A DNA stretch of 64,000 bases from Lepidodermella squamata (lineage: Eukaryota > Animalia > Gastrotricha), in contig JBLDXI010000058.1 of assembly GCA_047495785.1 (NCBI GenBank), forward strand, positions 310,001 through 374,000. The letters are read 5' to 3'. Position 1 is the first letter of the stretch, and every line of letters starts with the position of its first letter. This document shows, piece after piece, positions 6,161-38,430 of the stretch. A model generated the notes under the pieces. It saw only the letters and a list, made by a program, of their open reading frames with translations. It made no database searches and was not told where the DNA came from. The position numbers and the translations under genes were made by a program.

Positions 6161-6470
6161 AGCTCAAAAAAGCTGGCCAAGCTGGAAATATTTTTTGACG
6201 ATCGTTCACATACATTTATTTGCGCAAAGTTTGATAACATACATATTATCTAAGCGTCGTTTATTAGTCTTAATACGGCGTGATGTTGTTTCCGGGATCG
6301 TCCACGCCTGATAATTGTAATTTATTGCAATAATATTTATAGTGCGGCATTATTAATAAATAATTAGGTAGTACGAAAGGGAAAAACAGCGTGACTGCCT
6401 ACACCAGGCGTTACCTTTGACAAACATTGATTCGTCCATATTCAACCACCGGGGGTATTTTGACATATAT

Positions 6471-13807: not shown

Positions 13808-14200
13808 TATCACGCTAAAGCAAATTGACCTGTCGCAATTTCAGCCATGCTGCTGGAAACTATATCGCAATATGTATATGTGTGCGTGTGAAAAAAGCAG
13901 ATACAAACTTGGTAGTTTTTTCTGCGCAGGCGGTCGATGCAGCAATGGACATTGATCGTTATATAATCGATTGCTTTTCCACCGAGAATTGTGCAATTAA
14001 TATTGTATTAGCACTAACAAAGCCCCAGAAATCGTTTTTTGTCCTTTATATAAATCAGAGAGGTTTCTACCGATTTGCTAGCCTTTATTTTCTTTTGGAG
14101 AAACTAATATGAAATTATGCTCCTGATCGCTCCGAAATTAGTCTCAACAATTGTTGGCAGTGGATCATTTTATTACATCTTTCTGTGATTGCGAGAATGA

Positions 14201-16785: not shown

Positions 16786-17187
16786 ATGTTCCGAGTTTGG
16801 ACAATTTTCGCTCTTCTTCATCTTTTACTTAGCAGCTGTTGGGGCCAGGCTGCAGACGATTTGCTGGCGCCAGATTTTGACCTTTCCGATTCAGTCACTG
16901 AGAATGAACTAATCAAAGCAGAACGAGAACTTCGCAAGGCCTCAAAGCGCCTTCTGATCGACGACACACAGGATTTTCTGAGCATTGTCTGCCCGGACGA
17001 ATCTAAGCATTCAGATTGCTTGATCCGGTTCAAGCTGATAACAAGGTTCTTGACCCTGACGAATATAGTCATAGAGCATTCTTACCGACGTCGGCGTTTA
17101 ATTTTTCACTGCAACCGCCTCCTCAAACAAGTTTTTGAACAACACATAACAGTCGACAGATTCATACTTTCATGTGCAAACGTTTAA
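16786..17187 (+). CDS. Secreted 4-Cys protein, unknown family A, copy A1
   Basis: Signal peptide MFRVWTIFALLHLLLSSCWG, then C-x8-C, SYRRRR and C-x20-C-ANV*. Three paralogs are in the window. Confidence 0.8.
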   Translation: MFRVWTIFALLHLLLSSCWGQAADDLLAPDFDLSDSVTENELIKAERELRKASKRLLIDDTQDFLSIVCPDESKHSDCLIRFKLITRFLTLTNIVIEHSYRRRRLIFHCNRLLKQVFEQHITVDRFILSCANV

Positions 17188-17291
17188 TTCAAATTTAACT
17201 GTTAGTTCAACTAACATTTAACTAGATTTGCTAATAACTAATAGTTTTACTAAATTGTATCGAAAGTCTAACGGCACTCGAATAAAGATAT

Positions 17292-17780
17292 TCAAGAGTC
17301 TATTTTGCCGTCCATGATATTTTTTGCGATAATTTTCGCCCAGACGTAAAAGGGTCCATTTTGACTGCAAATCGCTATAGATCTGAACCTCTCCATGCAC
17401 GCCTCGCGACGTTTAGCCGTTTCGAGCTCATCCTGCCGTTGTTTGTCCATAATAGCCTGAGCTAGCATTGATTCGTAGTAGACAACAAGCGCTTTGCAGG
17501 CCTCAGGCATCCCCATTTGCATTTCAATGCGCTGCAGTCGGCACCTTTCGATGTAAGCTTTGAATTCGTTGTGCTTGATGGCTAAATTACGAAAAACATT
17601 GTACTATTCGGAGCGTTTTGCTGATAAAGTGTTAGATTTACCTTTCAGATTCGTAGATTGATTCGGCAAACCAAGTTTTGTAGCCTCGAAATCGCTCGAA
17701 ATTCCATCGGCAGATGATACGGCGACAATTAACAAGGCACATAACTTCCCTAGGGCAATGGCGAGCTTATTGGAAATCAT
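17292..17780 (-). CDS. Secreted 4-Cys protein, unknown family B, copy B1 (2 exons: 17780-17642, 17581-17292)
   Basis: Exon 1 encodes MISNKLAIALGKLCALLIVAVSSADG... (signal peptide). A 60-nt phase-1 GT-AG intron follows. C-terminus: CMERFRSIAICSQNGPFYVWAKIIAKNIMDGKIDS. Confidence 0.78.
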
Positions 17781-17984
17781 TTTTTGATTTTAAATTCGCC
17801 GTATTGTTCCTACAGGCCGGTATTGTGTCCGTTAAAGGGTCAAAACCCCGCGTTTATGAGTGGAAAACACCTCTCAGCAGCCTGCGCATGACCTAAAGCG
17901 CTAATCGTGCGTAAAGTCCCGATTTTGGTTGAGCGGTTTTTCGATGACTCATCATATTTATTTTATTGAAAAATTACTTAATTA

Positions 17985-18725
17985 TCACAATGCACTGGTG
18001 TTCAATCGCCGTTGCTGAATCATCACAACCGGTGGCATATTGAAGCCAGCTATTCTCGGTTCGTAATTGTCGCGGATGAGGTAGACACTTAAAACCAGGG
18101 CACTGAAGAGCATCACTCCACCTGAAATGTGGCAGACAAGGAGGGTAAGCGCCCAGACAAGCTGGCGAACATCTTCAGATAATAATCGACTCCTATCATT
18201 ATAGCCAGATTTCGGGAGTTGAGGCTTCGATATTACTCGAGATGAGTTGCTGGTAACAATAAGGTGGAACAGCAGCGATGGAACATTGTGGCTGGAATTC
18301 GTCGAGAAATCTAGGTCATCATTGTAATAACCTGGGTTGTCCAGTGACAAATCGGCGTAGTAGATTTCAACTGCACCCCAGACACTGAGCGCAAAGGCGA
18401 TGAAAGACATCAGGATTGCAATGAGGTGGTTCTTCGCATGCCGTGGCCATCGCTTAACAGCTTTCGTACGGCGTTGTAGTCGAAATTCGAAAGGCTGGTG
18501 GCATATTTCGCAAATCATTTGCTTGTAATAGCCGCTGTGGAATCGATTGTGGCCGAATCGAGAGAGTACGAATGTTTCAAGGCATTTCAAATGAGCGCAT
18601 CCGACTGAGCCACGGCATGAGCAGAACCCGGAAAATAACGCCTCTGACTCATCGCCATCACCCCCAGCCATGCTGCAGATTCGGCATTCGTAACTTGAAA
18701 TTTCTTCAAGATTTTCTTCCGACAT
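17985..18725 (-). CDS. MARCH-like RING-CH membrane E3 ligase M2
   Basis: CRIC...FCSCRGSVGCAHLKCL...CEIC and two TM helices separated by a long luminal loop. Ends with FNMPPVV. Confidence 0.85.
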   Translation of the reverse strand: MSEENLEEISSYECRICSMAGGDGDESEALFSGFCSCRGSVGCAHLKCLETFVLSRFGHNRFHSGYYKQMICEICHQPFEFRLQRRTKAVKRWPRHAKNHLIAILMSFIAFALSVWGAVEIYYADLSLDNPGYYNDDLDFSTNSSHNVPSLLFHLIVTSNSSRVISKPQLPKSGYNDRSRLLSEDVRQLVWALTLLVCHISGGVMLFSALVLSVYLIRDNYEPRIAGFNMPPVVMIQQRRLNTSAL

Positions 18726-19788
18726 CACGTGTGATAAAGCGAATTAGCTTTTTATGACCATAATAATTTAACATTGGTCACGGTTTTTAGAGGCCTAGCT
18801 GGTACCTGGGCTCTTTTTACGTATTCCTAGCGCTCGTCTATCGATCAGTACCGGCTATATGAGAGCGAGACTGGTGAATTAATTATTGATATTGATAACG
18901 ATTTTTCATCACGCCTCGAAGCTGGAACTCGCTTTGACTAATGCACAGCACGGTATGCACCGAGATTATCCTCGCGGCTAGCGGTCATTCATGCGTGACC
19001 GATCGGTATATTATGGCTGCTTGAATATTAGCAGAGACACGTAAATACCTGCGGGCAAAGTGTTAATTTTTCACGTGCGATCTCAAAATTTATGGGCCAA
19101 GAAGTGTTGAGTGGACCTGCAGAAACCTTTTAGCGATTTAAATACCATTTTAAATGCGAGTTTGCGGATTACGAAAAATCCACCTTAATAATTTTATTTT
19201 CATTGAGCGCACAAAATTATTTTCCCTTCGTTATTTTCTTATTTTTTGGTATCCATTTTATTCAAAAATCTTATATGGGCTAAATAGAATAGCCTGATAT
19301 GAAGTTTTCAGGATACATCTGGATAAAACAGTCTAAATAGGATAGATAACATTAAAACTCACGCTTCATTAATTCCAACCGCTTTTTCTCATGCCCGTAG
19401 GAAAATTATCTGAGAAAATAAGCAATGAAAAACAACAGCCAAAGTCTGTGCGTGAATCATCACGATAAACTTCATTTCAAGCGCTAATAGGTCAAAATTT
19501 ATGAACTAGTACCCAATGCGAAATTGCGATGAAAAAATGCGAAGAGGAAGATCCGTGTCCAAAATGACTAGCCAATTCGCTCCGAGTGGGTACATAAACA
19601 CCACGCTTCATTGAACAGATTAATTAAGCCTCTGACAACTTTCGTTTATTCTGTTAAAATTGCTATTCTATTTGAGATATTTTGCGACCTCCTTGTCCAG
19701 TCTAGAGATTTGCGTTTGCAAATATTACATCATTTTACAAAATTTTAAAAGAACAACAACATTTCAAAATTATAAGTCTACGAGTTTT

Positions 19789-20261
19789 TCAAGTTCGACG
19801 CCCATGCATGATATCTTTAGCGAGAATTTTAGCCCAAAGGTAAAACGACGTCTGGCTTCCTTCACCGGCATCGTCGCAGAAAGTTCGCGATTTCAGCAGT
19901 GACATGCATTGGTCGTAACGCTGGCGATATTTCACGGCCTGAAGTAGCGCGAAAAGTTTAGATAATCGAGTCTCGCTGTCTTCGACGCATTTAGGCGTGG
20001 TGCAGGCTGATCGATGCTGCAGCGCCTGTTTTATCGTCCGCTCGACGTTTTCCAAAAATTTCTCGCTATACATAGTCTCTATAAAATTAATCAAAATGAA
20101 AAAATTGAACGAGGGTAAATTTTCTTACGTTTCATGACGCTGATATCAGGCACAGTGGCTGATTTGTTGGCCAACTTGCTGCTTGCAATGCTTTCGACGC
20201 GAATGCAATCGGCTTGAAATGCGAACATTGCAAGAATTGGCAGAACAACAATAACTGCCAT
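19789..20261 (-). CDS. Secreted family B copy B2 (2 exons: 20261-20129, 20078-19789)
   Basis: Exon 1 encodes the signal peptide MAVIVVLPILAMFAFQADC. A 50-nt phase-1 intron (gtaaga...tatag) follows. C-terminus: CMSLLKSRTFC...FYLWAKILAKDIMHG. Confidence 0.78.
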
Positions 20262-20786
20262 TTTTATTTATAGAAATAAAATTGCTATATTAATGGCGCG
20301 TCAATAAATTTTTATTCGGACTGCGCGCACCAACGCGAATGCGGGGTGGAATAATAAAGGAAATTCTGTCAAGATGAGAGATTTTTACGATAATTTATGC
20401 AGTGATTGCTAAAAATGAGTATGAAGTTACTGGCAAGCCGAACTATTGATCAAAGGCCATTACTTTCAATTGGGCCCTAGATAATTTTTCATCTCTAAAA
20501 ATGAAGGCTTGAACTTCATCCTAAAAAATTATTTCTAGCTAGTTTTTTCTCTAACAAATTGATCACCAAATGACGTGGATTACCTGTATAAAAATAGAAC
20601 GCGTGCTGTAAAATGAAGGTTTCACCGGAAGCCGGTGAAAGAACAAATAGTGCGGAAATTTCGAAAATTATTACTACACAATTTTAGCGTACTCCGCGCG
20701 AATCAATTATAGTCCACTACGGGCCTCTTTCGGTGAGTAGGAGTGCGAAAGCCCCGCAGAAAATGGCTCACGTCAGAAAATAGCCA

Positions 20787-22435
20787 CCCAGGCGAACGCC
20801 GGTCATATTACTGTCATATTAAAATACGCTTAAATTCATATTAATGATGTCTTACAATACATATTACATTCATATAGTAAAATGTCCTGAATGTAATATG
20901 AATTTCGGGAAAAATTCATATGAATTTGCCGCGAAATTCACATGACTTTCATATTAATCACGCCATTAGAATCATATTAACCAAAAAATCGAATTTCATA
21001 CGGTTGTCATATGAATAATCAAAAGAAGTGCTCGCCACCTGGGCCACGCTAAGGGACACCTACCTGGGGGCTCCAAGGTGACACCCATGTCATCAGGAGG
21101 TGAAGGGAATCTTGAGATGGGTTCCAGGTGGCTCAGAACTAAATATGAATAAATCGAAAGGGATAATTTACTTACGTCGTCGGTCGGAGTCGAACCCGGG
21201 TCGCCTTGGCTTTAAGTGCGACGCGCTACCACTAGACCAGGTCGTCGCTATTATACGGTGGATGTCAATAGGGGTATATATAAGATTCAAGATTTTTTCC
21301 AGTTTTCAAACTTCAGAGGGCAAATCATGTAGCTTGCACTGCTCATAGAGCAGTTGGAACGGGTCTCCGGTCATCCATGGTACTCACAGGGGGCGCCTAG
21401 TATCTATGGTTCCCAGTTCCCATTATCGTTCATTGTATGTTCTGTTTTATTTATTGCGTTGTATTTATTGGATGCTACTTATAGAGTCTTACTTTTACCG
21501 GAACAAAATTTTGAAATATTCAAGGGGCCTAAAGCCACTCATGGAAAATTTCAAAAATGTAGTGATCAATCAGCATAATTTTCAATAGATTAAATAAATC
21601 AGCTTTAAATTCAATGTAAAATTTTGTTTAAGACGCATTCCTCACTATAAGATGCATTCAATTCCTGAATTTCGAAGAAATATTCGAAAAGCGACCTTTA
21701 GCTTATCTAAAATTAGGTTCCGCAACAGGCAAATTTGGTTATGCTACAAGATATTCTTATATTTATCAGTCTTTTTGTGTTAATTGTATTCATTCAGAAT
21801 CGTTCAAATATTAGTTTGGTGTAAAAAATCGCCTAAATAATCAAAACGAGCATTTAGAAATTAGTGCATGCGCTGCGAAAATTGCGACTTGGCGCACACA
21901 AAAGAAATTTCGAATACTCGAGTTTAATGGCGAAATGAGGCATAGGCGAACCTCTTTATTTCACACCCACTGGACCTAATAGCAGGACTCATGATCCCAG
22001 AGGTTTATCTCACTACTACCAGAAAATGTGTAAAAACTTAAGCATCTTTTTAATATGAAGAGAAGCATCTTCTTTCATATGAAATTTCATATGAATTACA
22101 AGCGGCTATGCTCAGATCTTCTAAGAATAGCCGATCATATTAAATTAATATTACCGTAGAAGCAACATTTCATATAGTTGCTAGTAATACGACATTCATA
22201 TGACCGCTACTCCAACATTTCACACTAATTCGTATGTCAGGACAAGAATCAGGACAATATGAAATTCATATGAATGTAGCTTACAAAATTAATATTAATT
22301 TTAGCCAACTTTTATACTAATATGATATTCATATGAAAATTACAGTATTTTTCATACCAGATATCAATTCATATGGCAACCTTATGAAATACGTATGAAT
22401 TTGCCTTGAAAACATATGAACGGCGTTCGTCTGGG
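20787..22435. mobile_element. Non-autonomous DNA transposon, EnSpm/CACTA(CMC)-like with CCCAG termini
   Basis: TIR cccaggcgaacgccggtcatat versus reverse-complemented right end cccagacgaacgccgttcatat (20/22). A 2-bp TSD 'CA' lies at 20785-86 and 22436-37. Many subterminal (t)tcatat(g/t)aa repeats occur at both ends. No transposase ORF. Confidence 0.8.
21175..21246 (-). ncRNA. Degenerate tRNA-like sequence / tRNA-derived SINE head inside the transposon
   Basis: The minus strand reads GACGACC TGGTCTAGTGG...CTTAAAG...GGTTCGACTCC, giving intact Pol III A and B boxes at tRNA spacing. The acceptor, anticodon and T stems do not pair properly. Confidence 0.55.
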
Positions 22436-22659
22436 CATAATAAAACATAGCTTGGCGCATTGCGAGTGAATCAGCCACAACAACATCCAGCGTTTTTTCA
22501 TTTTTTGTACCAGAGAGATCGATTTTACGATCCGCTAATTTGTCTAATTTGGTCAGTGTTTTTCTGCATCGTGTAATCTAGGTTATTATTTTCGGCAAGA
22601 GTCGCAACATCATAGAAATCTGAGATGGTTATTTTATTCATAATAATATTTTCATTAAA

Positions 22660-24094
22660 TCAAATTGCACAGCCTCTTAGATTTTGAAAAATAAACCACG
22701 GCCGCGAGACAGGCCGGTTCGCTAATTTACGGCCCCTGTGACATTGGTCATCCGGAAATGACTCATATTCAATCAATTTCCAACACTCGCCTAGTAGCTG
22801 ATAACGCTTTGGTCCGTAAAATCGATGTAAATTATGAAGCAGACAGTCGCCGGATGTTGGCTTCGCAATGAACAGGAGGCCGCCAGGTTTAACGATACAG
22901 CTAACCTTAGCCATGGCCATTAAATCACCGTCGGGATTGAGAGGCTCGCCATATCGGCCGAGACCATTTTGAGAAATCGTCGAATAAGTCACTGCAAAGT
23001 CGAATTTACCAATTAAATCCCCATTTGTAAACAAATTAGCCGCTTCATTCGTAGGCATGAAGGCGAGATGAGGATGTTTAGCCGGTAAAAATTCCGAATA
23101 ATTCAACGCATCAATCGACGTCACGTGACCAGCTCCAGATCGTAGAATTTCAAATTCAAGCCACGGATATGACGTCCCGATAACGACTCCATTTTTGTCG
23201 CGAATTAAATCGCCATATTTAGCCAGCAATGCCCGTAAAGGTAGTACGGTTGTCTCGAAATCGACCGGGTAGAAAATATCACGAGCGTGGGAAAAATCGA
23301 GATAACTGCGGTTTGTTAAATTTACGACGTAATTCCATTCGTCCATCACGTTTTGCTTCGTATTCACGGGCTCGTCTTGTGTTAATTGATGTTCGATTAT
23401 TTTATACCAAGATTGGCTGTGGTTAATAAATCGCTCCCGGATATTTTGATGAGACCAGGTGAAGTTGAGACCCCCTGTTGGGGACATCGGTAATTCGTGT
23501 TTTAAGTTTGTAAAACAAATAGGCTGGTCGGTATCAAGTCGCCAGTAATCGGTAAAATTCGATAAATCATATTCGATTAAGCCGTGATTTTTTAGATACC
23601 GGAAAACATGGTAATTTTTCTTCTTCGAATCAAGTTTGTCGACGAGTTCTTCAGGTGAGTTTGCCAGTATCGACTCGTGATTTTCCGCGTCGATTGCGAG
23701 GTAGGGGAAGGTTGAGCTGTAAACGGCCCAAGGTTCAAACCAGCTTGAAACTCGACTGGCTGATGATTGATCGATGTTGTTCGACCATAGACGAGATTCG
23801 ATAATTGGGCAATACGTCATTGTTTGAGCTTCGCGTGGCAAATTTTGCTCGCAACGAACGCAAAATGCCGGCAATTTGCTGCTGGAAAAATCATTTTTTT
23901 GTAGTCCAAAACAATTTTTAAATGGCAATTAAAATTATTCACCTAATTCGCAACAGGGCTGTTTTATTGACTGACCGTTTAACCGAAGCATTTGACGATT
24001 TTTGGTGAAAAGTGAAATAAAATAAACAACCGATAACTACTACAACGAGAAATCCCGTAAATTTTGAACGATCACAGGCAACCATTTCTACCAT
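22660..24094 (-). CDS. DUF268-like (putative SAM-methyltransferase fold) type II membrane protein, 2 exons
   Basis: FDFAVTYSTISQNGLGRYGEPLNPDGDL...KPGGLLF...HRFYG matches the DUF268 signature. The upstream exon (ATG 24094) encodes a TM anchor FLVVVVIGCLFYF and is spliced AG|gtgaat...ccag. Confidence 0.8.
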
Positions 24095-24294
24095 AAGCAA
24101 GTTGCTGACAAAAATAATTCAAAGTTTTGAATAGTTGCTCGTAATTTGGCACGCGATTCTAAATCAAGCGCCTTCCGTCAGCTCGTCAGCTCGCCATTCA
24201 TATTGACACCTTTTTCCAGCTGAAATTGTACGCTGGAAACGAACAAAATCAAGTTCGATATTCTGAATCGCGCAAAAATATTAGGGCAAAATTT

Positions 24295-24342
24295 CCCCGA
24301 TTATTGGCCGATTATTCCGATTATCCCCCGATTATTGGCCGA
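24295..24342. repeat. Short tandem repeat (ccgattat-based)
   Basis: ccccgattattggccgattattccgattatcccccgattattggccga. Confidence 0.6.
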
Positions 24343-24357
24343 AAAAGCCGCATAAAT

Positions 24358-24441
24358 TTAATGAGGAGTTTCAAGAAATCGAGGAGTTTCTTCGGCAAAA
24401 GAATGCTTGAAATTCTTCAACTTCTTAAAACTCCTCATTAA
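24358..24441. repeat. 20-bp inverted repeat with TTAA ends
   Basis: ttaatgaggagtttcaagaa ... ttcttaaaactcctcattaa (19/20 complementary). Confidence 0.65.
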
Positions 24442-24947
24442 TTAAATTGATGCGCATCGAATTTCCGTTCGGCGGCTTTTTTGGCCACCCTGTAGCACAA
24501 GGACATTTTTTATCGCGGTTAAAATCGACAGCAAATTATTCGAATAGAATTGTCTCTCTGCTCGCCTCATTTTTGCTTGCTCCTGTGTTTTTATTTTATT
24601 ATCAAAATTTAGTGAATTTCTATTTTCATCTACCTATATGTTTTTGGCTGATTAAAATTAGACACCCAAACGAATTCGGTTCCACTTTGATTTTTGCGTC
24701 AAATAAATCAAAACAAATAGGTTTCCCTGAAATTGCTTCTCGGACTATTTTAGCCCTTTTTATTTTATCTAATAAACATGACCTAGGTCAAAGACGGTTT
24801 ATGCACCCTCTCTGCATAGATAAAGCAGCACGTGTTCCAGCATAATAATACACACACTTACAACAGCAAAACAAGCTCGTATCAGCTCATATGCGGTTTT
24901 CATAGGATTTTTATGAGGAATAACTCCGAATTTTTTGAAATTTTAGA

Positions 24948-25889
24948 ATGACGTTTTTTGCTGAAATCGGCGTAGCGGTCACGGCTTATTTCTCCCTGCG
25001 AGGTGCTTATCGAGTGGCTAAATTTTACCAAGCTCATTTCACCCGTAGTAAAATCGACTTTTCAAAACTTCAAACCGCTGTTATAACAGGCCCAACTGAC
25101 GGCATTGGCAAGGCTTATGCTTTCGAACTGGCTCGACTTGGCCTGAAACAGCTTGTTTTAATCGGTCGAAGCCCCGAGAAGCTAGCATCGACATCGGCTG
25201 CGATCGCTGCGAAATACCCAAAGGTCCAGATTCGAACAATTCAAGCTGATTTTCAAGAAATCGACATCTACCCGAAAATCGAGGAGCAACTCAGCGATCT
25301 ACGCGATATCGACGTGCTGGTTAACAACGTTGGCGCGAATATCAATGTTCAAAGACTAGTCCATGACACTTCGAGAACGAATCTATTCAAAATGATTAAT
25401 ATCAACATTGTGTCTACGGTGATGATGAGTCAGATGATTTTGAAGAAAATGGTTGAAAATCAACGACGGGGTGTTGTTATCAGCATGTCGTCATGCGCTG
25501 CTAATTTCCCGGCTACTGCACCCGTATACACGGCGGCTAAAAAGTTTGTTACGAGGTTTAGCGAAGGTCTTGGGATTCAGTATGACAATCAAAAGTTCGG
25601 CATAACGGTTCAAGTTGTCGAGCCTCAAGTCGTTCGCACGAAGATGTCGAGGTACCTCACAGGGCCGTTTGCGATGGAACCGGATGCCTACGCTAGGGAG
25701 GCCTTGGCAACAGTTGGCCATTACGACCGAACTGCGGGTGGGACGAGGCATGATTTCCAGGAGTTTTTGCAATCTCTACTGCCGCGGCAAGCGGTGATCT
25801 TTTACATGAAAATATTTCAGCGGGAAATCTCGAAAGCTGCAGCTGAGCAAGGTAACAATTCCAATCTGCTGAGTAATAAAACTGGCTGA
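24948..25889 (+). CDS. Short-chain dehydrogenase, HSD17B12/very-long-chain 3-oxoacyl-CoA reductase-like
   Basis: TGPTDGIGKAYAFELA, LVNNVG and catalytic YTAAK. Intronless CDS. Confidence 0.88.
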   Translation: MTFFAEIGVAVTAYFSLRGAYRVAKFYQAHFTRSKIDFSKLQTAVITGPTDGIGKAYAFELARLGLKQLVLIGRSPEKLASTSAAIAAKYPKVQIRTIQADFQEIDIYPKIEEQLSDLRDIDVLVNNVGANINVQRLVHDTSRTNLFKMININIVSTVMMSQMILKKMVENQRRGVVISMSSCAANFPATAPVYTAAKKFVTRFSEGLGIQYDNQKFGITVQVVEPQVVRTKMSRYLTGPFAMEPDAYAREALATVGHYDRTAGGTRHDFQEFLQSLLPRQAVIFYMKIFQREISKAAAEQGNNSNLLSNKTG

Positions 25890-26109
25890 TAAATGATTTT
25901 TTTTGTACAATAAAACCTCCTTTTACCTGTAACAACATGGTCTTGTTTTCGGAAAATTCGTGTTTTTTACTTGTTTATCAAGTTTCAAGGTGAATGAACG
26001 CACTTGCACTAAGAATAGCTTATTATAGAAATACAGTATGTCCCATAAGTAACACAAGCAAAGAAAATACGCTGAAAAGGGTTCAGCAACTCTAAAATGA
26101 GAAGTCCTA

Positions 26110-26608
26110 GGGTGTATTTCACCGCCTTGAAAATATATACATTTTCATTGTGAAATTCCATTTTTATTTAATTTAGGAGCGTATCGGGGTCGAAAAACTA
26201 GAGCCAAAAGCATCATATTTTCAGGATCTTTGTTGTTCTCGGACGCAGGGATTAGAATATTCGTCCGAAAATTCATTTTTTGCCCGTGTCGCCATCCACC
26301 CCCGACACGTTCGGAGAGGCTGCAAAAATGGTATGGCACCGCGTGCATCGCTACTTAATCCACATGTCCGTCTCTTTTGGGCACCATCCACCCGCAAGAC
26401 AACCCAGAAGCCGCCCTGAGCGCGGCTTAAAAATGCGTCAGATGTGCATCGAAGCGCATCAACAGAGAAATTGGGGGCTGCCTAATACCGGGTGGTGCCC
26501 GTTTGGCAAGAATTAAGACGCGAAAAAACAGCTTGGCAGAATTTAAACAAGTGTGTCGATCGTATTTCACCATTTTTTATATAATTTTTAAGGCGGTGAA
26601 ATACACCC
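26110..26608. mobile_element. MITE, PIF/Harbinger-like
   Basis: Perfect 19-bp TIR gggtgtatttcaccgcctt and 3-bp TSD CTA (26107-09, 26609-11). 499 bp, no transposase. Confidence 0.82.
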
Positions 26609-27866
26609 CTATCTCATGGCCAGAAAAATGTTGGAAAATTTCAAAAAATCCCGAGAATATTAATCAAGTATGTCACTTGTTAATCGGATTAAACAAGTCC
26701 GGAGAGATTTGGTCCAACCAGGTAAAATACCGAAAAGTACCGAACCAGTTAGCATTGAGGTTTTCCGGGTTTTCCTCCGGGTAAATTTGTTCATTTCTTC
26801 GGTAAAATCGCCGATAAAGGAATTCTATCGTTATGTTTAATTCGAAAAAATTCATTGAATTTCATACAAAAAGTTGCCAAATTAAAAAATGGTTGCGCAA
26901 CTTCTGGGGCACCCGGTATACCTTTTCAAAGTTCACTTTTCAGTGAATTAGAAATTAATTGAAAAAATTATATTATTAATAAATTAACTAAAAATGTAAT
27001 AGTTAAAAATTGACATGTTTAGGGTTCGAAATCTAACAGATTATAAAACTGATTCTTAAATCTAAATTCTTTTCTTGGTCTTGGAATCTAAGTCCTGCCT
27101 CGAGCAAGACATAGATTTTATTTGATTTGTGGTATTTTTCGTCGATTTCAAGCTATTTTGAGCCAAATTTATTAGAATAATGTCACGAATGAGGTCAAAA
27201 AGTGAAAAGCAGGAGAATCAATTTTCGCTCGGTTTTTATTTAAAATTTGCCCCATAGTAAATTTTCAAATTAAGTTTGGCCGAAAACAGCGAATATTTAA
27301 TAATTTTGGGTAAATTATAATAAATTCAGACGAATAATACATTTTTTGCTTCGATCACATCCCCCCTAGGCATGGACAGCAATTGATTAATTTTTTAATT
27401 AATTTATGGAATTTTGAGGCTTTCCGAAATTTGACAAGATGACATTTTCTTTCGAACTCATCACATGTGGAAAAGCGTAGGTTCAAATTGTGTTTCATGT
27501 ATTCAATTCGCAGCAAAAAATACAATCACTTGGAAAATGTGACGAGAAATTTTAAAAGCCAAGAGTTTACGGAATTTTCCCGTCAAAAATCAGACCAGCT
27601 TAAAGGTTCCATAAAATCGCCGCAATTTGCAGATCAATCAGAATTCCGGAATCATCCTCCAATTGTGCTCCGAAATATCAAACTTTTGAGCTTCAAGCTG
27701 ACAAATTTCAGGACTGAAATCCATACTAGGGTAACATAGATAACTTATTTATTGATTAAAGTTCGACATGCCTGAGATAGTTTTATTGGGATATAATTTC
27801 ACGAGGTTAAAACCAACTCGTCTGCTGCGTTCAAAGGTCAGAAAGGTCAGTTCAAAGGTTCATCTT

Positions 27867-28283
27867 TTAAAGGTCAGCGCAAGTGACGAGAAATAGATCG
27901 ATCGAAAGCCGATGTTCAACAACTTCTTTGATCAGACGATTGCAGCGATTTAGGCGCCGTTGTCGTGACGAATTACCTGAAATTGTGTACGATCTCTCCA
28001 CGAACCGCTTGATCAAAAACGAACGTAGCAAACATGCAGCCAGCCAGTCATCAATAGCATCGGAATGATTCGAGCATACTTGGCTCAGAAGACTTCGAGC
28101 ATAGAGCAGCAGCCGAGCGGTTACTTTCGCGAGCTTTTGTTCTGTAATAGTCGCTCTTGTACCTTCAATCAGGCCATCCGTAACCTTGGCTCCGCCTTCC
28201 GCTGCGTCTTGCGAAGATAAACAGTAGCCGAGATTCATTGCTTGGAGCAATACCAAACATGGTAATGCGAATATCATCTCCAT
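27867..28283 (-). CDS. Secreted family A copy A2
   Basis: Signal peptide, C-x13-CLLRSFLIKRF, RQRR and C-x20-C-ADL*. Confidence 0.8.
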   Translation of the reverse strand: MEMIFALPCLVLLQAMNLGYCLSSQDAAEGGAKVTDGLIEGTRATITEQKLAKVTARLLLYARSLLSQVCSNHSDAIDDWLAACLLRSFLIKRFVERSYTISGNSSRQRRLNRCNRLIKEVVEHRLSIDLFLVTCADL

Positions 28284-28593
28284 GCTGTAGAATTTTTATA
28301 AACTAGCAATGCTTACACCTGGGCTGAGCTATCCACCTATCGAGGTGAGTAATATGACAAGGTGAATCAATTTTAAGCCCGCAGACACATACACTGACTT
28401 CTGAAAGACAATTCCTCATACTGAAAAGAGGTACAATGTTATACGTATATACGTAGAGGTACGTCCTATACATGTTCCTAGAAAAACTAAAAAAACAGTA
28501 TAATTTATAGGAATTACAATTATAAATAAATTAACGACACTAGAAAAAATCACGGTATAGTAATGCTACACGGTAATTTTTGGAGACAATTGA

Positions 28594-29190
28594 TCAGCAT
28601 TTTATTTCAATCACTGGGGGCATTTTAAAGACTAGATTTTCAGTATTTCTCGACGCTTGGAAGATCCAGCGTCTTAATTTGAGTCTTGAACAGCTAGAGC
28701 TAACTTTAATAGTCAAATAAATCACTAAGGTGAATATCAAAAATAGCCCGAAAGAACAGAGTATTGAGTTCAAAATTACAGCCCATTTGGATTTCACGTA
28801 ATCACTCGAAATTATCCACCATGTCAGAATGCCGGCTAGCAGGACGATAGAAATCACTAGGCAGGCGAAGAACTTGCAAAATGACCACTTAAGAGTTACA
28901 TCAGGAAGGCGCCACAGCCAGAATGGTTTGACGGATGTAGATTCGATGGCATAGGGCTGTTCGCAAATTTCGCAACAAGGCTGGCCAGCGAAGTTGAACC
29001 GGGCTGTCTGAGATGAAATCGAGGAGTCGAGACATTTCTTGTGCACGTAAGCCAGAGACCCACGGCATGCGCAGAATTCTGTGAAAAGAGCCGGCGGGTT
29101 GTCCAATGCATCTTCAGCCAGGCTTCCGAGACATATTCGGCATTGGATATAGGGTATCTGCAGTGAACTTTTGGAAGCTGAGCTTTGCAT
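28594..29190 (-). CDS. MARCH-like RING-CH membrane E3 ligase M3
   Basis: CRIC...FCACRGSLAYVHKKCL...CEIC and two TM helices. Ends with FKMPPVI. Confidence 0.85.
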   Translation of the reverse strand: MQSSASKSSLQIPYIQCRICLGSLAEDALDNPPALFTEFCACRGSLAYVHKKCLDSSISSQTARFNFAGQPCCEICEQPYAIESTSVKPFWLWRLPDVTLKWSFCKFFACLVISIVLLAGILTWWIISSDYVKSKWAVILNSILCSFGLFLIFTLVIYLTIKVSSSCSRLKLRRWIFQASRNTENLVFKMPPVIEIKC

Positions 29191-29448
29191 AGATTGTCAA
29201 TGGCTAGGTGGTAGTGGAATGGGAATACTATCGAGTGCGTTTCAGGGTTATCATTATAGCTCTACCATATCGTCTAGTGATAACAATGTTGTTACTCCGT
29301 ATTTTGATAGGAATGTCCTATATAGTGTACCCTTAAACTGGTGACCTCTAAATGAGTATGAGTGAGCACATTATTTTTATTTAGTTTAAAGGCTATCAAC
29401 AAAATTGCCTCTTTATAAGAGAAATCCACAAAGAATGAGCTGTTTCCG

Positions 29449-29856
29449 CTAGGCATTAGCACAATGAAGAATGAATCGGTCAAGGGTAATTCGCTGTTCG
29501 ATCACTTCCTTAATGAGATGATAGCAGTGGCTGATGAGACGCCGCCGTCGGTAAGAATAAACCGGGACAATGTGAGTTCGTTTGACAAATCGTTTGATCA
29601 TGTTAGATCGAATCAGGCATCCAGCCTTGTCGTGATCTTCGGAGCAAGCCTCACTCAATATGCCACGGGCATCGATCTGTAGCTGTTTTGTGGCTTTGGA
29701 CAGCTCCAGCTCCGTCTCTTGAATCTCACTCTCGAGGTTGTTGCCGATAGCTGTTAGATCCGAATCGCCATCTTCTACTGGCAGAACATTGGCCATCGTA
29801 GTTTCAAGGCGAAGTACAACGAGCCCAAGAGTTACGATCAAACAGATTGATACCAT
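29449..29856 (-). CDS. Secreted family A copy A3
   Basis: ATG 29856 (MVSICLIVTLGLVVL), C-x8-CLIRSNMIKRF, SYRRRR and C-x20-C-ANA*. Confidence 0.8.
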   Translation of the reverse strand: MVSICLIVTLGLVVLRLETTMANVLPVEDGDSDLTAIGNNLESEIQETELELSKATKQLQIDARGILSEACSEDHDKAGCLIRSNMIKRFVKRTHIVPVYSYRRRRLISHCYHLIKEVIEQRITLDRFILHCANA

Positions 29857-30483
29857 TTCCAAGTTAGAAATTGATTTGGGATCGAAAATGTAATGCTTAG
29901 ATATCAAGAAACTTCACCATTTTATAGCAACGACTGGCGTAGAGTCTCCTTCCTGTAGTTAATTAAATTGATTTCTTCTATTTTTTAATTGGGTCGGAAT
30001 GGCTTTCAGAACATCTTCATTGACATATCGGCTAACAATCTTCGTCACCCATGCGCTAAATTTCGTTACAGCTAAACACATTTAATTGCGTTATGCTGTC
30101 ATAAACATTCTTGTCCGAGCGAGAAGCAACACTCTAAGCAAAGACTGGCTTGCCATTCATCCGAAACTATGCAAACACTGACAAGCGTTTTAGGACGTCG
30201 AGGGACTTCAAGTAACTTCATTGATGAATGTTTTGAATCCGATGGAATAGCTTGATTAATCACATTATCCCTTCTGTGCCTTGGCGTACTTCACCTGTCA
30301 AGTGTCCAATTAATTTGAACTTTGAGAATTGAAATGATCCTGATGAGACGAGAAGAAATTTCCGTCGTAGACATGTTTATTTCCAAAGCTGTCAGACTGA
30401 ACATTCATAGGAATGTCACGAATGATAAATACAGTTATGAAATACAACATCGAGAACAAGTATAATTGGAGATTCCAATGAGA

Positions 30484-32751
30484 TTATTGTGAACGCAGCA
30501 GATTCCCCGAAACAATAGCGATGATTGCGCAAACTACAGCGAAGCAAATCATTCGACCATCAGGTGATGCTATAATGAAGGAGATCAAAGCAGCTGCAAT
30601 GATCATCACGAGTAGATTGAGTACAGTGACACGTTCGTACCTGAGCTCACGTCGCTTGCGTGTGACGTAGGCGGTAAATATGGACCAAAGCAGCAGAATG
30701 ACGAAGCTAATTAACAGCGCAGATACCCAGTGAACCTGGTTTCTTGACAAGCAACCTCCCGCCTTTGTAACCAAGAATGTGTCACTTGCTGCATCGTAGT
30801 TCTCGGATATTTTGCTCTCTTCGAAGACAGGAATTTCTGAAGTATTCCAAGCGGCCAAATAGATAGACAATATAGCACAGAAAATTAGCATGCAAACGGT
30901 TGTGAATTTGAAATCGGAAGCTTTCAGGCGGTCATTTGTAGTCATAAGAGTAGGGCTTTTAGGAAACCTTGCCTCATAGAAGTTTTTTACACTTTTTGTT
31001 GAGATATCCGTTGATTTGTTACGCTTAATATAATCCGACTGCCGCCTGGCTTTTTCGAGACGTGCAAAACAGTATGCAATAACGATACCGATACCTAATG
31101 TGGGAGCAAGAGTTTGGAGAATACAAAGTGCTGAGGATCCGTCCGGGTATGAAAAAGAAAAGAGCCCAGCCGCGAAGTCGATTAACAAACAACCGACGTA
31201 AAATGTAGAATGACATGGAATAAGCCAGGCGATTTGTTCGCTACTGCTTTTCATTGCCGACTTGACATACAGGTACGTATGCCAAATCGCAATTGCACCA
31301 CTTGTAGACAGTAGGGTCCACGAGAGTTCATTAGGAATACGCTGAGCTACAACTACGACGATTGGGCCATCTCGAGGAGGTTTACCATCAACCGTAAACC
31401 ACGTCGGTTTGCGGTACTCTTTCATCGCATAGCTTGAGAAGTAGTAAATCGATGAGTTAGTCGCTGCACTGATTACCGATAGGTCTCTCAAGCCATTTTG
31501 AGGCGTCCATTGAATGACTCCTTGGGCATCCGAGTCAGGCTCACCTCGTGCAGAGTACTCGAACTTGCCAATTCTCAACCCGAAGAATTTCACGTTGAGA
31601 GTCGATTCATTGACAGCCAGCATAACTTCTTTCGGATTCGTTTCGAAATCTGTCAAAGACATGTTCTTTGCACGTAGCTTTCGCTCGGCAGAGTCGAGGA
31701 CCATAGCAGCTTCAAGCCCTGTGTCATAGCAATGATAACGGCGTATAGCATCAAGCGGGGCCCTGCCGCCAGTCACGTTCTGATACCGAATTTCGAATTC
31801 CTGCAGCGTAGTCCCACTTGAGGTTTTCAGACCTGAGTCTGAACCATATTCATTAGCAGGTCCGTTCGCCCATGAAATCCAAATCGAAGCCTTGAATTGA
31901 TTGAGGAGCATTTCTCGCGTGCAGCCTGGAGCATTTGCGATAACTGGCGGTAGATTTTTCGGTTCCGAGTATGAACCCGTTAGAATTATGAAAGCATAAC
32001 GTGGTCCAGTTAAACCGGCCATGTGGGCCATACAAAGAGCCTTGTTCACAAAAATAGCCGCTCCACTGTCAATGACAAGAATACGGGTATCTGATTGTTT
32101 GATAGCAGCTATTGTTTCGTCTGTTACATCGGTAACAGTGCCAAAATACGATACGTGGAAGCTATTCTCATTCGCGACCTTATATAGAAATGTAGCAAGA
32201 GCCAGATCGAATGCACTGTTAACAGAAGTCAATATCCCGAATCTATTCCATTTGCCAACATCACGGATGAAACGCATCTGAGCATACGCAACGAGTTCTC
32301 CTGTTATTCGAGTTCTGTAAAAGTTCGGGTAGAGGCGTCGATTCGCCGTAGTTTGAGGGTTATTCACCCCTGTAGCGAGTTGGACCATATCCAAGTGATG
32401 AACAGCAGCTGCAAGAGCTGCACCGCCAGTTGCGAAGAGAGGTCCAATGAGGAGAGGCGACTGATATTCGTTGTCGCTGTTGTTCCGGCGAAACTGAATT
32501 GCAGTTCGAGTGGCCAATATTCCGCCCGGCCCTTCATCCGCAAAACTTGCTTTGATCTGAAAACCCAGCAAAATATCCTTATTTTCGTTTACAGTATCGA
32601 ACGCCACTTGAACTGCGTATCGACATCCATCTCCGTTCTGAGGCTCATTGCCCGTCTGAGGTATCAGGACCAGTACAGAAAGGGTGTTCCGCTCTGCAGC
32701 CTGGATAATTGGAAAGCTGCTGATTGCCAACAGAAAGAATAGTACAATCAT
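30484..32751 (-). CDS. GABA-B-like class C GPCR G5
   Basis: Signal peptide MIVLFFLLAISS, VFT nearly identical to G1 and 7 TM. Ends LLRSQ*. Intronless. Confidence 0.88.
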   Translation of the reverse strand: MIVLFFLLAISSFPIIQAAERNTLSVLVLIPQTGNEPQNGDGCRYAVQVAFDTVNENKDILLGFQIKASFADEGPGGILATRTAIQFRRNNSDNEYQSPLLIGPLFATGGAALAAAVHHLDMVQLATGVNNPQTTANRRLYPNFYRTRITGELVAYAQMRFIRDVGKWNRFGILTSVNSAFDLALATFLYKVANENSFHVSYFGTVTDVTDETIAAIKQSDTRILVIDSGAAIFVNKALCMAHMAGLTGPRYAFIILTGSYSEPKNLPPVIANAPGCTREMLLNQFKASIWISWANGPANEYGSDSGLKTSSGTTLQEFEIRYQNVTGGRAPLDAIRRYHCYDTGLEAAMVLDSAERKLRAKNMSLTDFETNPKEVMLAVNESTLNVKFFGLRIGKFEYSARGEPDSDAQGVIQWTPQNGLRDLSVISAATNSSIYYFSSYAMKEYRKPTWFTVDGKPPRDGPIVVVVAQRIPNELSWTLLSTSGAIAIWHTYLYVKSAMKSSSEQIAWLIPCHSTFYVGCLLIDFAAGLFSFSYPDGSSALCILQTLAPTLGIGIVIAYCFARLEKARRQSDYIKRNKSTDISTKSVKNFYEARFPKSPTLMTTNDRLKASDFKFTTVCMLIFCAILSIYLAAWNTSEIPVFEESKISENYDAASDTFLVTKAGGCLSRNQVHWVSALLISFVILLLWSIFTAYVTRKRRELRYERVTVLNLLVMIIAAALISFIIASPDGRMICFAVVCAIIAIVSGNLLRSQ

Positions 32752-33729
32752 TTTCAAAAATCGACTATAGAAATATTAGATAACGTTTGTCAAATGAAGA
32801 GCGCACACTCGAAAAACGCTTTCATCGCATTTTAATAGCTCACGTTGAAGAGAAGCACGTTCTAATACAGCTTATTTAGCTACTCTGCCCAGAACTTTCG
32901 AAGTCTGGCTAATTTGTAGGTTTTGGCGTAGATAATTATCGACGGCAAGCGAAGATGATTATACTCGTGCGCAGAGATTATAGATTATATTAAAACACGG
33001 ACTCAGAACTGAGGAGCGTCGCATTTTTTTAGCCTTGGAAAAATTAGTGCCATGCTCCAGTAGGGCTGAAGCTGGTGTCTTTTATTCTAAATATCAGCTA
33101 TTCAAAATATGTCGAAAATTCTTAACGTTCGTCTAAAAACCACCGCGGAAGAAATATTTTGACCATTTTTGACAGGTTTGTTTTGCATGCCCGCCGACGT
33201 TTCCTGCCTGAGTTCGCTTTGCCTCACGAAATTGGTACTTATCCGCTCAATTTTTTACCTGAAGTACGCGTCTCGAATGCTGACCAGGAAGAAAAGTAAA
33301 TGCAATCCATGCTCGTCTTTCAGTTAGTCTCGGCGGAGAAGTTTCCTTTTCCTTGACGCTGGAAATTTGAACTAGAGAATACATCAAATCTCTTGTTTGC
33401 TCTGAGGTACTCAACCCTCATCAATGCAAAAATCATATGCGAAAGCAAAACTGTCACTCGGAAGTTTTCAGTCTGCTTAGTTTTGGCGCAGCCTTTGGCA
33501 AGAAACCTTCCTCTCAAAACCCAAACAACGCCTACTCAAGTATTGAATGCACTGTAAAGAAATCAGAAGCCGCCCGATGAAGACGCGGGTTATTCATTAA
33601 ATACGCGGTTTCTTGTCCCTTCCTTGCACAAGAGTTTTACATGCCTGGCATTTTATTGATGAATACAATGTAGCATGCTAAATCTACGGAAAAATCAACC
33701 AGCTCTGCCGATTCTTTGGTTTCAATGTG

Positions 33730-34182
33730 TTATACGTTAGCACAAAGCAGAAGAAAGCGATCCAGTGAGAAATGTTGCTCAACCACTTCTTTAATTAGGC
33801 GGTAGCAGTGGTTGATTCGACGGCGCCTCCTGTAGGAATATATTGGGATGAGATGAGTGCGCTTGACGAATCGTTTTATCATCATAGATCGTAGCAGACA
33901 GCCATTCTTCTCGTGGTCTTCTGTGATGGCTTTGCAAGCATCGCTTAGTATACCCCGCGCATCGACTAGAAGCTGCTTTGTCGCTTTAGAAAGCTCTAGC
34001 TCGGTTTCAATCACCTCGTTTTCAAGGCTGTTGTTGTTGTTGTTGTTTGAAGCTGCCGTGTTGTTCGAAGCGGCTGCCGGATCTAGCATGCCATCATCAA
34101 CTGGTACGATGTTAGCCATACAAGTTGCTAACAAAACTTGCAAAAGTGCAACTACTTTTAAGTTATCGCGGGTGAAAATCAT
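33730..34182 (-). CDS. Secreted family A copy A4
   Basis: Signal peptide, poly-Asn (AAC)n tract, C-x11-CLLRSMMIKRF, SYRRRRR and C-x20-C-ANV*. Closest to A3. Confidence 0.8.
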   Translation of the reverse strand: MIFTRDNLKVVALLQVLLATCMANIVPVDDGMLDPAAASNNTAASNNNNNNSLENEVIETELELSKATKQLLVDARGILSDACKAITEDHEKNGCLLRSMMIKRFVKRTHLIPIYSYRRRRRINHCYRLIKEVVEQHFSLDRFLLLCANV

Positions 34183-36084: not shown

Positions 36085-38430
36085 CTATTGCTCATATGCT
36101 AGGATTTTAATTATCGGATTTCGTTTCTTGGTAATGGCATAAGCTACACCAATGAAAGGGCTTTTAGTTGTAGGCAATCGCGAAGTCTCATCTTCTCTTC
36201 TAAATGAGAGGACGAGGCACGCCATCGAGCAGGATTGCGTCAGCAAGCCGATAGAAATAGCGATTTCTGATCCACTAGACGAATTGCTGCTCAAGATGTA
36301 AGAGATCACGGTAGTCGCCAGGAACAAAGTGACCGTCACCACGATTATAACCAGCCAGCGTTTACTACATTGTAATTGAGCCAAGCCGGGGTGAGATTTT
36401 ATTTTAAAAGCAATAGCAGCGGCGAATAGAAGAGCCGCGAGGTTTGTTGAAATCAGAACGGGAACCCAGTAGTGTGAGAAATGCGCCCCGCAGGAGACAG
36501 TAGTGAAAGTCACAACGGTATCGGTGCTTTCAATGTATTCTTTGTGAGAGAGAACTCGAAATACTGCCTGCATCGGGTCTGATGCCAGCGATGCCGCAAC
36601 TAAAATTATATTAAGAAGTATAAACACTCCAGCAGCGAAAATTATCCGCCGTTGATCCAATTTAGGAACGATAATGCTAACAGCTTTTCTCGATCTCGCT
36701 GGTGAACTATTAGGTGAAACTCTCAACTGCCGAGATGTCGCATGCAAGCGAGCTGATAGAAGTCCGAATAGAGATGAAATTCCGATGTAAAGAAGACAAA
36801 AGGCGACATTACATGACTCGCTACTTCTGAATTTCGGGGGCGTGACCACGGCGATAGAAGCCGCATTCAAAGTAATCAAGCTGACCGTCAAAGCCGAATT
36901 CCAAACTACTTCGTGCTTCTCGTAGAACTGTTTTGCCGCAAGGATTACTTGGGCTATAGAAATAATGACTGATAAGGTTATTATAATTATGAAAAATGTC
37001 TCCGTAACACCTGCTGACCGAATTTCGAAGACTGAAGAGTCTTTCGGAAAAAGTGTGGCTGGCAGAGCTTCGATGGATGCGGTCGAATAAGAGTTCAAAT
37101 CGGAGATATCAGACGCATTTTGGCTAAGTATTATTTCATATAAAATAACCAAGCCACGGCCTTCCGCCCATCTAGTAACTAGCTGCGGTTCAGAATCCCA
37201 CTCCCCGCGTTCAGAGTAGCTGAAATCTCCGAATCTCAGACTACGATACTTTATTTGCATAGCAGTTTCGTTCGTGATTAGCATGACTTCTCGTGGGTAC
37301 TTCTGATAATCTCGAAGGGTCATATTGTACTCCGCCAATTTGCGCTCTGTCCTATCCAGGAGAATCACTGCATGAACAGCTCTATCATAGCAGAGGTGCC
37401 TAAGCCCATCGCCACCGTTAGTTGTGAAGTTGGTCCGAATGCGCCAGAGTTGCTCAAATTCGTCAAATGTTAGCCCCAATTCGCTCTTACCAGCCGGTGG
37501 GGTAAGGGCCGGAAAAGATGTGCCTATGAAAAGCGAGCGATCGAGCTGCTCAAGAAGGATTCTGCTCGAACACCCCTCAGGAAAGAGATCCTTCGAAAAA
37601 GTTGTTGGATCCGGGAAAGAGAACAGCTGAAAGAAAAACATATACCGCTCGCCTCGGATATCGTTTAGATAAGCGCGACAAAGAAAAAGAACTACTGACA
37701 CTGGCTCGACCACTTCGAAGTTGAACACGCGTATATTCCTCTCGCGGAGATATTGCATGAACTGGTCGTTGAAATCCGTGCTAGCGTCGTAGACAGCAAC
37801 ATCAAGCCCTGCCGCGGTCGCTGCTCGATACACAAAGCTTGAGCTCTCGAGGCCGTATGTGTTGAGATTCATGTGGGTAATGACAGCAATTCTTCGAATT
37901 TTCGTTGTCTTGGTAATGAAACTTATTCGGCTGAGTAGGGCAATCTCGCCAGCAGATCGCACTCTATACATGTTAGGATAGAGATTTCGCCTGGCTGACT
38001 GTGATGGGGCTGTGCAAGACCCGGCGATGGAAACGAGGTTAAGATGACCGACAGTTGCTCCCATCGCTTTGCATCCAGTATTGAAGAAGCCACTGAGTAT
38101 GACTGGAGAGACGGATACATTTTGTCGCTGAGCGTCATTATGCTCCCACATGTAGCGTACAGTTTTCTGAGTAGTCTGAGAGCTAACAGGACCTTCGTCA
38201 AGGTAATCCATTTCAACCTTGTAATCTGGAAGTATATCCTCGCGGCTATTCACGATATCAAGAACAATGTCATGCGCGATTTTGCACCGATCGAACTGAT
38301 ACCCTGGATTACCAGTAAATGGCAGTTGGGCCAAAACCTTTAGCTGCTGCGTTTTCTTCAAACAAACGATTTGCCCGAAGGAAACCACAACGATGAATGC
38401 TGTGTAGCTAAAAATGAGGTCAAATATCAT
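36085..38430 (-). CDS. Divergent GABA-B-like class C GPCR G6
   Basis: VNSREDILPDY, DEGP, LYPNMYR, CYD and YSERGE are shared with the other paralogs. It has 7 TM and a short C-tail, and is intronless. Confidence 0.85.
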   Translation of the reverse strand: MIFDLIFSYTAFIVVVSFGQIVCLKKTQQLKVLAQLPFTGNPGYQFDRCKIAHDIVLDIVNSREDILPDYKVEMDYLDEGPVSSQTTQKTVRYMWEHNDAQRQNVSVSPVILSGFFNTGCKAMGATVGHLNLVSIAGSCTAPSQSARRNLYPNMYRVRSAGEIALLSRISFITKTTKIRRIAVITHMNLNTYGLESSSFVYRAATAAGLDVAVYDASTDFNDQFMQYLRERNIRVFNFEVVEPVSVVLFLCRAYLNDIRGERYMFFFQLFSFPDPTTFSKDLFPEGCSSRILLEQLDRSLFIGTSFPALTPPAGKSELGLTFDEFEQLWRIRTNFTTNGGDGLRHLCYDRAVHAVILLDRTERKLAEYNMTLRDYQKYPREVMLITNETAMQIKYRSLRFGDFSYSERGEWDSEPQLVTRWAEGRGLVILYEIILSQNASDISDLNSYSTASIEALPATLFPKDSSVFEIRSAGVTETFFIIIITLSVIISIAQVILAAKQFYEKHEVVWNSALTVSLITLNAASIAVVTPPKFRSSESCNVAFCLLYIGISSLFGLLSARLHATSRQLRVSPNSSPARSRKAVSIIVPKLDQRRIIFAAGVFILLNIILVAASLASDPMQAVFRVLSHKEYIESTDTVVTFTTVSCGAHFSHYWVPVLISTNLAALLFAAAIAFKIKSHPGLAQLQCSKRWLVIIVVTVTLFLATTVISYILSSNSSSGSEIAISIGLLTQSCSMACLVLSFRREDETSRLPTTKSPFIGVAYAITKKRNPIIKILAYEQ

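Follow-up and report, generated by a model that had tools for sequence, protein, structure and literature searches.

The precursors of somatostatin, urotensin II, melanin-concentrating hormone (MCH), allatostatin-C and the natriuretic peptides share a layout in which a signal peptide is followed by a pro-region, a basic site and a C-terminal disulfide ring that runs to the stop codon. Four paralogous genes of similar outline, here named A1 to A4, lie in a 64,000-nucleotide stretch of the genome of the gastrotrich Lepidodermella squamata (GenBank assembly GCA_047495785.1, contig JBLDXI010000058.1, forward-strand positions 310,001 to 374,000), the whole of which we refer to as the window (C58:310001-374000). 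A first-pass annotation of the window described them as a novel secreted prohormone-like family and recognised no known neuropeptide family with this layout, a statement that is too strong, because somatostatin-type precursors share the layout while differing in ring size and in the conserved pro-region. We interpret the family as taxon-restricted small secreted proteins that most likely each form one folded helical unit acting uncleaved, a reading to which we give about an even chance.

As in the somatostatin-type precursors, the putative cyclised peptide of these proteins is unamidated and ends at the stop. The ring, however, spans 20 residues and is predicted to be a helix-turn-helix, compared with about 4–15 residues in the somatostatin, urotensin II, MCH, allatostatin-C and natriuretic precursors; moreover, the region before the basic site matches the peptide in conservation and contains a disulfide of its own, and there are 14 tandem paralogues. 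Neither Pfam nor a profile search of 1.84 billion proteins gave any sequence similarity to these ring-peptide precursors. A second comparison is with 7B2 and proSAAS, convertase-binding proteins from which cleavage at an internal polybasic furin site releases about 30 aa as a C-terminal peptide. The family shares with them an internal polybasic site about 30 residues before the C-terminus of a small secreted protein, but it does not match their Pfam models, its terminal piece is a disulfide ring, and gene number and conservation pattern differ.

The family in the window and in the genome

The list of open reading frames (ORFs) and an alignment confirm four single-exon (intronless) genes where the first-pass annotation had placed them. 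A1 (16786..17187, forward strand) encodes 133 aa with a signal peptide at about residues 1-21 and cysteines at residues 69, 78, 109 and 130; its basic cluster RRRR is at 17086-17097 and its terminal 29-aa piece at 17098-17184, and an AATAAA-type signal lies 94 nt past the stop codon. The other three are on the reverse strand. A2 (27867..28283) encodes 138 aa with cysteines at 70, 84, 114 and 135, a cluster RQRR at 27954-27965 and a terminal 28-aa piece at 27870-27953. A3 (29449..29856) encodes 135 aa from its first ATG, the listed ORF of 152 aa beginning at a TTG upstream; it has cysteines at 71, 80, 111 and 132, RRRR at 29539-29550 and a terminal 29-aa piece at 29452-29538, the last being the peptide that the first-pass annotation quoted. 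A4 (33730..34182) encodes 150 aa, with an Asn-rich N-terminal region of low complexity (an Asn run), cysteines at 83, 95, 126 and 147, RRRRR at 33817-33831 and a terminal 28-aa piece at 33733-33816. A1 is 34-43% identical to each of the other three, and the four genes match the family profile with E values of 1e-54 to 1e-62, so that homology is far above chance; the G+C content of the window is 37-46%. All of the quoted motifs were found in all four: a signal peptide, four cysteines (Cys1 to Cys4), the spacing Cys1-x8..13-Cys2 followed by CL[IL]R..[LM]I.RF, the basic cluster, and exactly 20 residues between the last two cysteines with three more after the last.

Further members lie elsewhere in the genome from which the window comes, which totals 121.2 Mb in 151 contigs. 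A six-frame profile search returned 17 matches (E 1e-62 to 4e-7), and a repeat with a 13-member profile returned 20. Four copies do exist in the window, as first described, but the family as a whole has 14 intact loci and one frameshifted pseudogene in three genomic clusters. Apart from the four genes on C58, profile searches and reading of the loci place a tandem cluster of seven at C33:809-819 kb, two members at C16:355 and 365 kb, and a single divergent member at C33:1046 kb. The pseudogene, of the C16 type, is at C16:397.8 kb (C16:397854-397991; L043:1313-1731) and has its signal peptide and core in separate frames and its terminal hairpin destroyed. In a tree, a divergent group (B5, B6, B7 and the C33:1046 kb member) with C-terminal tails and degenerate basic motifs splits from a core group with R-R-R and C-x3-stop. 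The genes multiply through tandem duplication.

Four further copies, at C33:897-913 kb, belong to a block, C33:885-925 kb, which runs collinear with the window and is 90-98% identical to it in nucleotide sequence. Either the block is a haplotype of a parthenogenetic animal that was left uncollapsed, or it arose by a very recent segmental duplication with gene conversion. The duplicated segment corresponds to window positions 3916-45989 (C33:885000-924997) and its divergence is very uneven, A4 being 100% identical and A3 92%; about 1.7 kb of the window (20774-22433) has no counterpart in the C33 block.

The overall architecture is common to the family, and the statements here on the alignment, the signal peptide and hydrophobicity cover 13 aligned members. 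Each of the 13 begins with Met and a hydrophobic stretch and has no later membrane segment; in A1-A4 the best 12-residue mean Kyte–Doolittle value of the N-terminus is at least 2.3, and by hydrophobicity the predicted secretion signal is clear. Following the signal peptide there is a variable, mostly acidic N-terminus, then an amphipathic helix leading to Cys1, and a Cys1–Cys2 loop that is 8-13 residues long except in the C33:1046 kb member, where it has 48. After Cys2 comes L[IL]R..M[IV]KRF[LV]K.T, the motif with the best conservation, succeeded by a polar linker, often with Pro, and by S-[YH]-R-R-R-[LR]-R-I-x-H; the terminal order is Cys3, 20 residues, Cys4 and usually three more residues. 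The only invariant positions are one Arg, Cys3, one Phe and Cys4. The C-x20-C-x3-stop arrangement that had been called invariant is only partly so, with C-x20-C present in 14 of 14 members and C-x3-stop in 10 of 14, four divergent members having 5-14 residues beyond the last cysteine. Cys1 and Cys2 are absent from two members, both on C16.

The basic cluster is similarly variable. The furin-type sites reported for the window genes are all present (RRRR, RQRR, RRRR and RRRRR), but elsewhere the cluster degenerates to KLKRFR, QQRRAK, RRQRLR, RQRK or QQRRLK. The R-x-[KR]-R furin motif is confined to A1, A3, A4 and the window allele of A2 (the C33 copy of A2 reads QQRR where the window copy reads RQRR) and is not conserved family-wide: B1-B4 and member C1 have R-R-R-L-[RQ], while B5, B6, member C2 and the C33 allele of A2 have no Arg at P4. 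At the homologous position nearly all of the 14 members have a basic pair and the remainder R-x-R, and the position following the cluster is usually occupied by L, I or F. Charge is unevenly distributed along the protein. The N-terminal half has a net charge of -10 to +1; that of the C-terminal half is +6 to +13, most of it residing in the helix after Cys2 and the linker, with only -1 to +3 in the terminal 25 aa; some members are near neutral overall (isoelectric point [pI] 6.5).

Selection and the search for relatives

Substitutions were counted by segment with the Nei–Gojobori method in paralogue and allele comparisons. Among paralogues the ratio of non-synonymous to synonymous rates (dN/dS, or omega) is about 0.03-0.15 for the Cys2 helix, the linker with its basic cluster and the terminal piece, with dS near-saturated, whereas the signal peptide and N-terminal region have an omega of 0.4-0.9 and numerous indels. 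Between B1 and B3 the terminal piece has 16 synonymous changes and one non-synonymous change, and the omega of the Cys2 helix is 0.09. Three diverged allelic pairs, pooled over the mature core, show about 18 synonymous changes against 10 non-synonymous ones, an omega of about 0.17, and the A1 allele comparison gives 0.10. Because both types of comparison show strong purifying selection, the family members are real genes. AATAAA or ATTAAA is present 28-269 nt downstream of the stop codon in 12 of 13 genes. The segment-wise analysis suggested by the first-pass annotation thus reveals strong constraint, but not a constraint concentrated on the terminal peptide, because the helix before the basic site (dN/dS 0.09-0.15) is held as tightly and only the far N-terminus is relaxed.

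The family has no detectable relatives. Pfam searches with single proteins and with all 13 members, at E values up to 5, gave scattered chance matches with none common to the members. With the family alignment, a word-index search found no relative among 5.8 billion proteins; there was no match at E up to 0.001 when the profile was run against 1.84 billion representative proteins, no match between the profile and the PDB sequences at E up to 10, and no usable match in the ESM Atlas when searched by features. At the level of structure, the best Foldseek match in the PDB has an E of 2, an atlas fold search gave template modelling (TM) scores of 0.45 or lower, and the VIA wide fold search gave generic antiparallel helical hairpins in a flat list with Z 7.2-8.5, values that are uninformative for helical models. 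The absence of relatives partly reflects sampling, since an exact look-up in a 15-billion-protein collection found no window protein at all, even the conserved short-chain dehydrogenase and RING neighbours being missing. We conclude that this is a novel and apparently lineage-restricted secreted family from a lineage barely sampled in the libraries; the earlier claim of novelty stands, with the Pfam, PDB, profile, word and fold searches giving no confident match to a known family.

Two specific relationships can be set aside. CaaX prenylation, brought to mind by a cysteine fourth from the end, is rejected because the signal peptide directs these proteins to the secretory pathway rather than the cytosol, because the a2 position is N, D or H, and because four of the 14 members have 5-14 residues after the cysteine. 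Kinship with a secreted helical family of the same genome, also represented in the window, that contains a QPFYLWA motif is likewise rejected, hhalign giving a probability of 1% with an alignment of three sequences for that family.

Predicted fold and the question of cleavage

AlphaFold2 was run twice on the 13-sequence alignment, with full-length A1 and with mature A4, giving a mean predicted local distance difference test (pLDDT) of 80.9 and 81.5, respectively, and about 90 across the C-terminal 90 residues. The A1 model has helices at residues 34-58, 61-68, 72-117 and 123-130, and that of mature A4 at 19-60, 65-112 and 116-123. In both, a disordered N-terminus is followed by a long helix, a short Cys1–Cys2 loop, a second helix of about 46 residues that spans the linker, the Arg cluster (pLDDT 87-90) and Cys3, a three-residue turn, and a short last helix with Cys4. 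A single continuous helix through the linker and the Arg cluster is plausible but not secure, because of a trough in the hydrophobic moment, a phase step and the linker Pro. A column-by-column scan of the moment reveals strong amphipathicity in helix 1, the Cys2 helix and the Cys3 helix, with the trough and phase step falling across the linker and basic cluster.

Both models place Cys1 and Cys2 around one loop and Cys3 and Cys4 on the terminal hairpin, so that each pair is local. We infer that the disulfides pair Cys1 with Cys2 and Cys3 with Cys4, because the C16 members lose the first two jointly and keep the last two, and because the Cys1–Cys2 spacing is elastic (8-48 residues) whereas that of Cys3–Cys4 is fixed at 20.

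On the reading that we prefer, that of an intact folded protein, the long helix after the disordered, acidic N-terminus would pair antiparallel with the second long helix, the Cys1–Cys2 disulfide would close the loop joining them, and the short last helix would fold back and be stapled by the invariant Cys3-x20-Cys4 disulfide. The conserved functional part would be the C-terminal ~60 residues, comprising the strongly basic amphipathic helix, the stapled helix-turn-helix and, between them, the polar linker that bears the Arg cluster. The basic stripe and stapled hairpin could together be the surface that binds a partner outside the cell, whether a receptor or something polyanionic, both being purely conjectural, and the acidic N-terminus may act as a fast-evolving modulator or spacer. 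Action without cleavage would be in keeping with the basic pairs inside the conserved I-K-R-F helix (a KR pair in eight of the 13 aligned members, a basic pair in nine); as the KR pair is conserved within a helix, basic pairs are also structural in these proteins. In size, secretion, helical build, disulfides between neighbouring cysteines and lineage-specific expansion, the family resembles insect chemosensory proteins, Aplysia attractin and Euplotes pheromones, but its cysteine spacing differs, there is no sequence or fold match, and the two-helix hairpin has no evident ligand cavity.

Several observations count against an uncleaved protein, and most of them favour the principal alternative, in which a furin- or prohormone convertase (PC)-type enzyme cuts after the Arg cluster and frees a 28-29-aa helix-turn-helix peptide cyclised by C-x20-C. 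The freed peptide would be a hormone, neuropeptide or pheromone, and the upstream helix a second product or an aid to folding or sorting. All 14 members have a basic pair or R-x-R at the position of the cluster, one Arg being invariant, as would be expected of a processing site, and the four window genes have R-R-R-R, R-Q-R-R or R-R-R-R-R there. The polar, non-amphipathic linker before the cluster is where the hydrophobic moment of the core is lowest, and it contains Pro in about a third of the members (at two columns, in 4 of 13 and 1 of 13), and the continuous helix of the AlphaFold2 models may be over-predicted from an alignment of 13 sequences. Processed peptides are classically laid out as a C-terminal ring running to the stop codon, and this family has that layout together with a signal peptide in every member, an invariant ring length, and its strongest constraint on the terminal piece, to judge from the B1–B3 comparison.

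Processing of this type is possible, but we do not favour it and regard it as the less probable of the two. The helix before the site is under the same constraint as the peptide, unlike ordinary pro-regions; AlphaFold2 sets the site inside a helix, at high pLDDT; and in most members the cluster is followed by Leu, Ile or Phe, residues reportedly unsuitable at P1' under the established furin rules (Nakayama 1997). The full R-x-[KR]-R is missing from B5, B6, member C2 and the C33 allele of A2, the four divergent members extend past the last cysteine, and a dibasic-specific enzyme would also cut at the KR pairs of the upstream helix. The positive charge, furthermore, sits in the pre-site helix and the cluster rather than in the terminal residues, and there is no amidation or other maturation signal.

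A role in host defence or as a secretory-gland effector, which could be compatible with either the intact or the processed form, seems to us unlikely. The anionic N-terminal part would mask cationic helices that bind or attack anionic surfaces, microbial or other, a build known from many antimicrobial peptide precursors. The charge dipole between the two halves and the amphipathic core helices might suggest this, and a taxon-restricted, tandemly duplicating family with a fast-evolving N-terminus, embedded among other orphan secreted gene families, would fit it. Hydra arminin and periculin and the cathelicidins also have an acidic N-terminal part, a basic C-terminal part, an intervening basic site and a taxon-restricted tandem organisation. 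In the present family, however, the positive charge lies mainly before and in the basic site, leaving the terminal piece near neutral; the basic core is under purifying rather than diversifying selection; some members have a pI close to neutrality; and the searches run gave no similarity to a known antimicrobial family.

More improbable still is a gastrotrich-specific signalling system in which the 14 proteins are precursors of 28-29-aa cyclised alpha-hairpin peptides, constituting a new class of hormone or pheromone, with receptors among the orphan class C G-protein-coupled receptors (GPCRs) of this genome.

Besides a freed ring peptide, the first-pass annotation had offered a hormone of two disulfide-linked chains; such a product, made by a cut at the Arg cluster, would be of the insulin/relaxin type. 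A helical protein with four cysteines, two on each side of a basic site, does invite this comparison, and the insulin/relaxin superfamily shares the small secreted helical build, disulfides and basic processing sites. Nevertheless, we consider it very improbable: the C16 members and the C16 pseudogene lack Cys1 and Cys2 but have Cys3 and Cys4, the two spacings behave differently, and the models keep the two pairs in separate local sites. With local pairing no disulfide bridges the cut, and cleavage would therefore yield two separate pieces. Insulin and relaxin have a six-cysteine pattern (CC-x3-C-x8-C in the A chain) and inter-chain bridges, whereas the present proteins have four cysteines, or two in the C16 members, lack that pattern and have no Pfam match.

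The notion that the copies are chance ORFs or decaying remnants, to which the frameshifted locus at C16:397.8 kb lends some colour, is scarcely credible in view of 14 intact ORFs that keep start, signal peptide and stop, a dN/dS far below 1 with saturated dS, and polyadenylation-type signals after 12 of 13 stops.

Genomic neighbourhood and significance

The neighbours of the family in the window are six intronless class C GPCR ORFs, three RING-variant membrane proteins, a DUF268 protein, a short-chain dehydrogenase, an ankyrin protein and a claudin-like protein. The class C GPCR ORFs, identified by Pfam matches to ANF_receptor and 7tm_3, are at 23-1999, 3609-5738, 6471-9074, 10727-13033, 30484-32757 and 36085-38460. 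A first look at the genome gave 542 class C candidates, and nearly all of the 150 that were scored matched; they constitute a very large expansion of orphan receptors, some of which adjoin family members in the window (for example 30484-32757) and on C16 (C16:366901-369231). The small RING-variant (MARCH-like) membrane proteins form a tandem array on the reverse strand (13100-13813, 17985-18728 and 28594-29190). This array is also present at C58:299-304 kb and C33:848-908 kb, with genes of the present family at one end, and over half of the 39 PF12906 matches in the genome are in the array region and its C33 counterpart.

Linkage to these genes was considered as functional evidence and rejected, as both types are abundant or arrayed and are absent beside the largest family cluster. 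At C33:809-819 kb there is no class C receptor or RING-variant neighbour within the 20 kb read, and because of this the neighbourhood is given no functional weight.

The DUF268 protein is a 422-aa ORF on the reverse strand at 22660-23928 (E 7.5e-30); Pfam describes DUF268 from Caenorhabditis, and here it is found in a gastrotrich. Also in the window, on the reverse strand, are two ORFs with the motif [PS]F[YF][VL]WA (17292-17522 and 19789-20094), with others at L019:707-1213, 4496-4930 and 6097-6636. They end in a C-x9-C ring followed by [PS]F[YF][VL]WA...IM.G and apparently belong to the very large secreted helix-loop-helix family with the QPFYLWA motif, which by hhalign is unrelated to the present one; they adjoin the present family both in the window, where they seem to be without a signal-peptide exon, and in the cluster at C33:804-811 kb. 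Two more small ORFs with signal-peptide-like starts and no Pfam family (L019:2905-3381 and L019:3599-4132, at C33:806.9-808.1 kb) are next to the seven-gene cluster, and that region of C33 thus abounds in orphan secreted genes.

The molecular biology of gastrotrichs is almost unexplored, and a strongly constrained, lineage-restricted secreted family provides a concrete target for study. If the proteins are processed they would add a class of peptides with an unusually large helical ring; if they are not, they would illustrate that a polybasic stretch and a C-terminal cysteine pair can mimic the layout of a prohormone. Several orphan secreted helical families, this one among them, are present in the genome, and together they suggest large-scale invention of small extracellular proteins beside the very large expansion of class C receptors.

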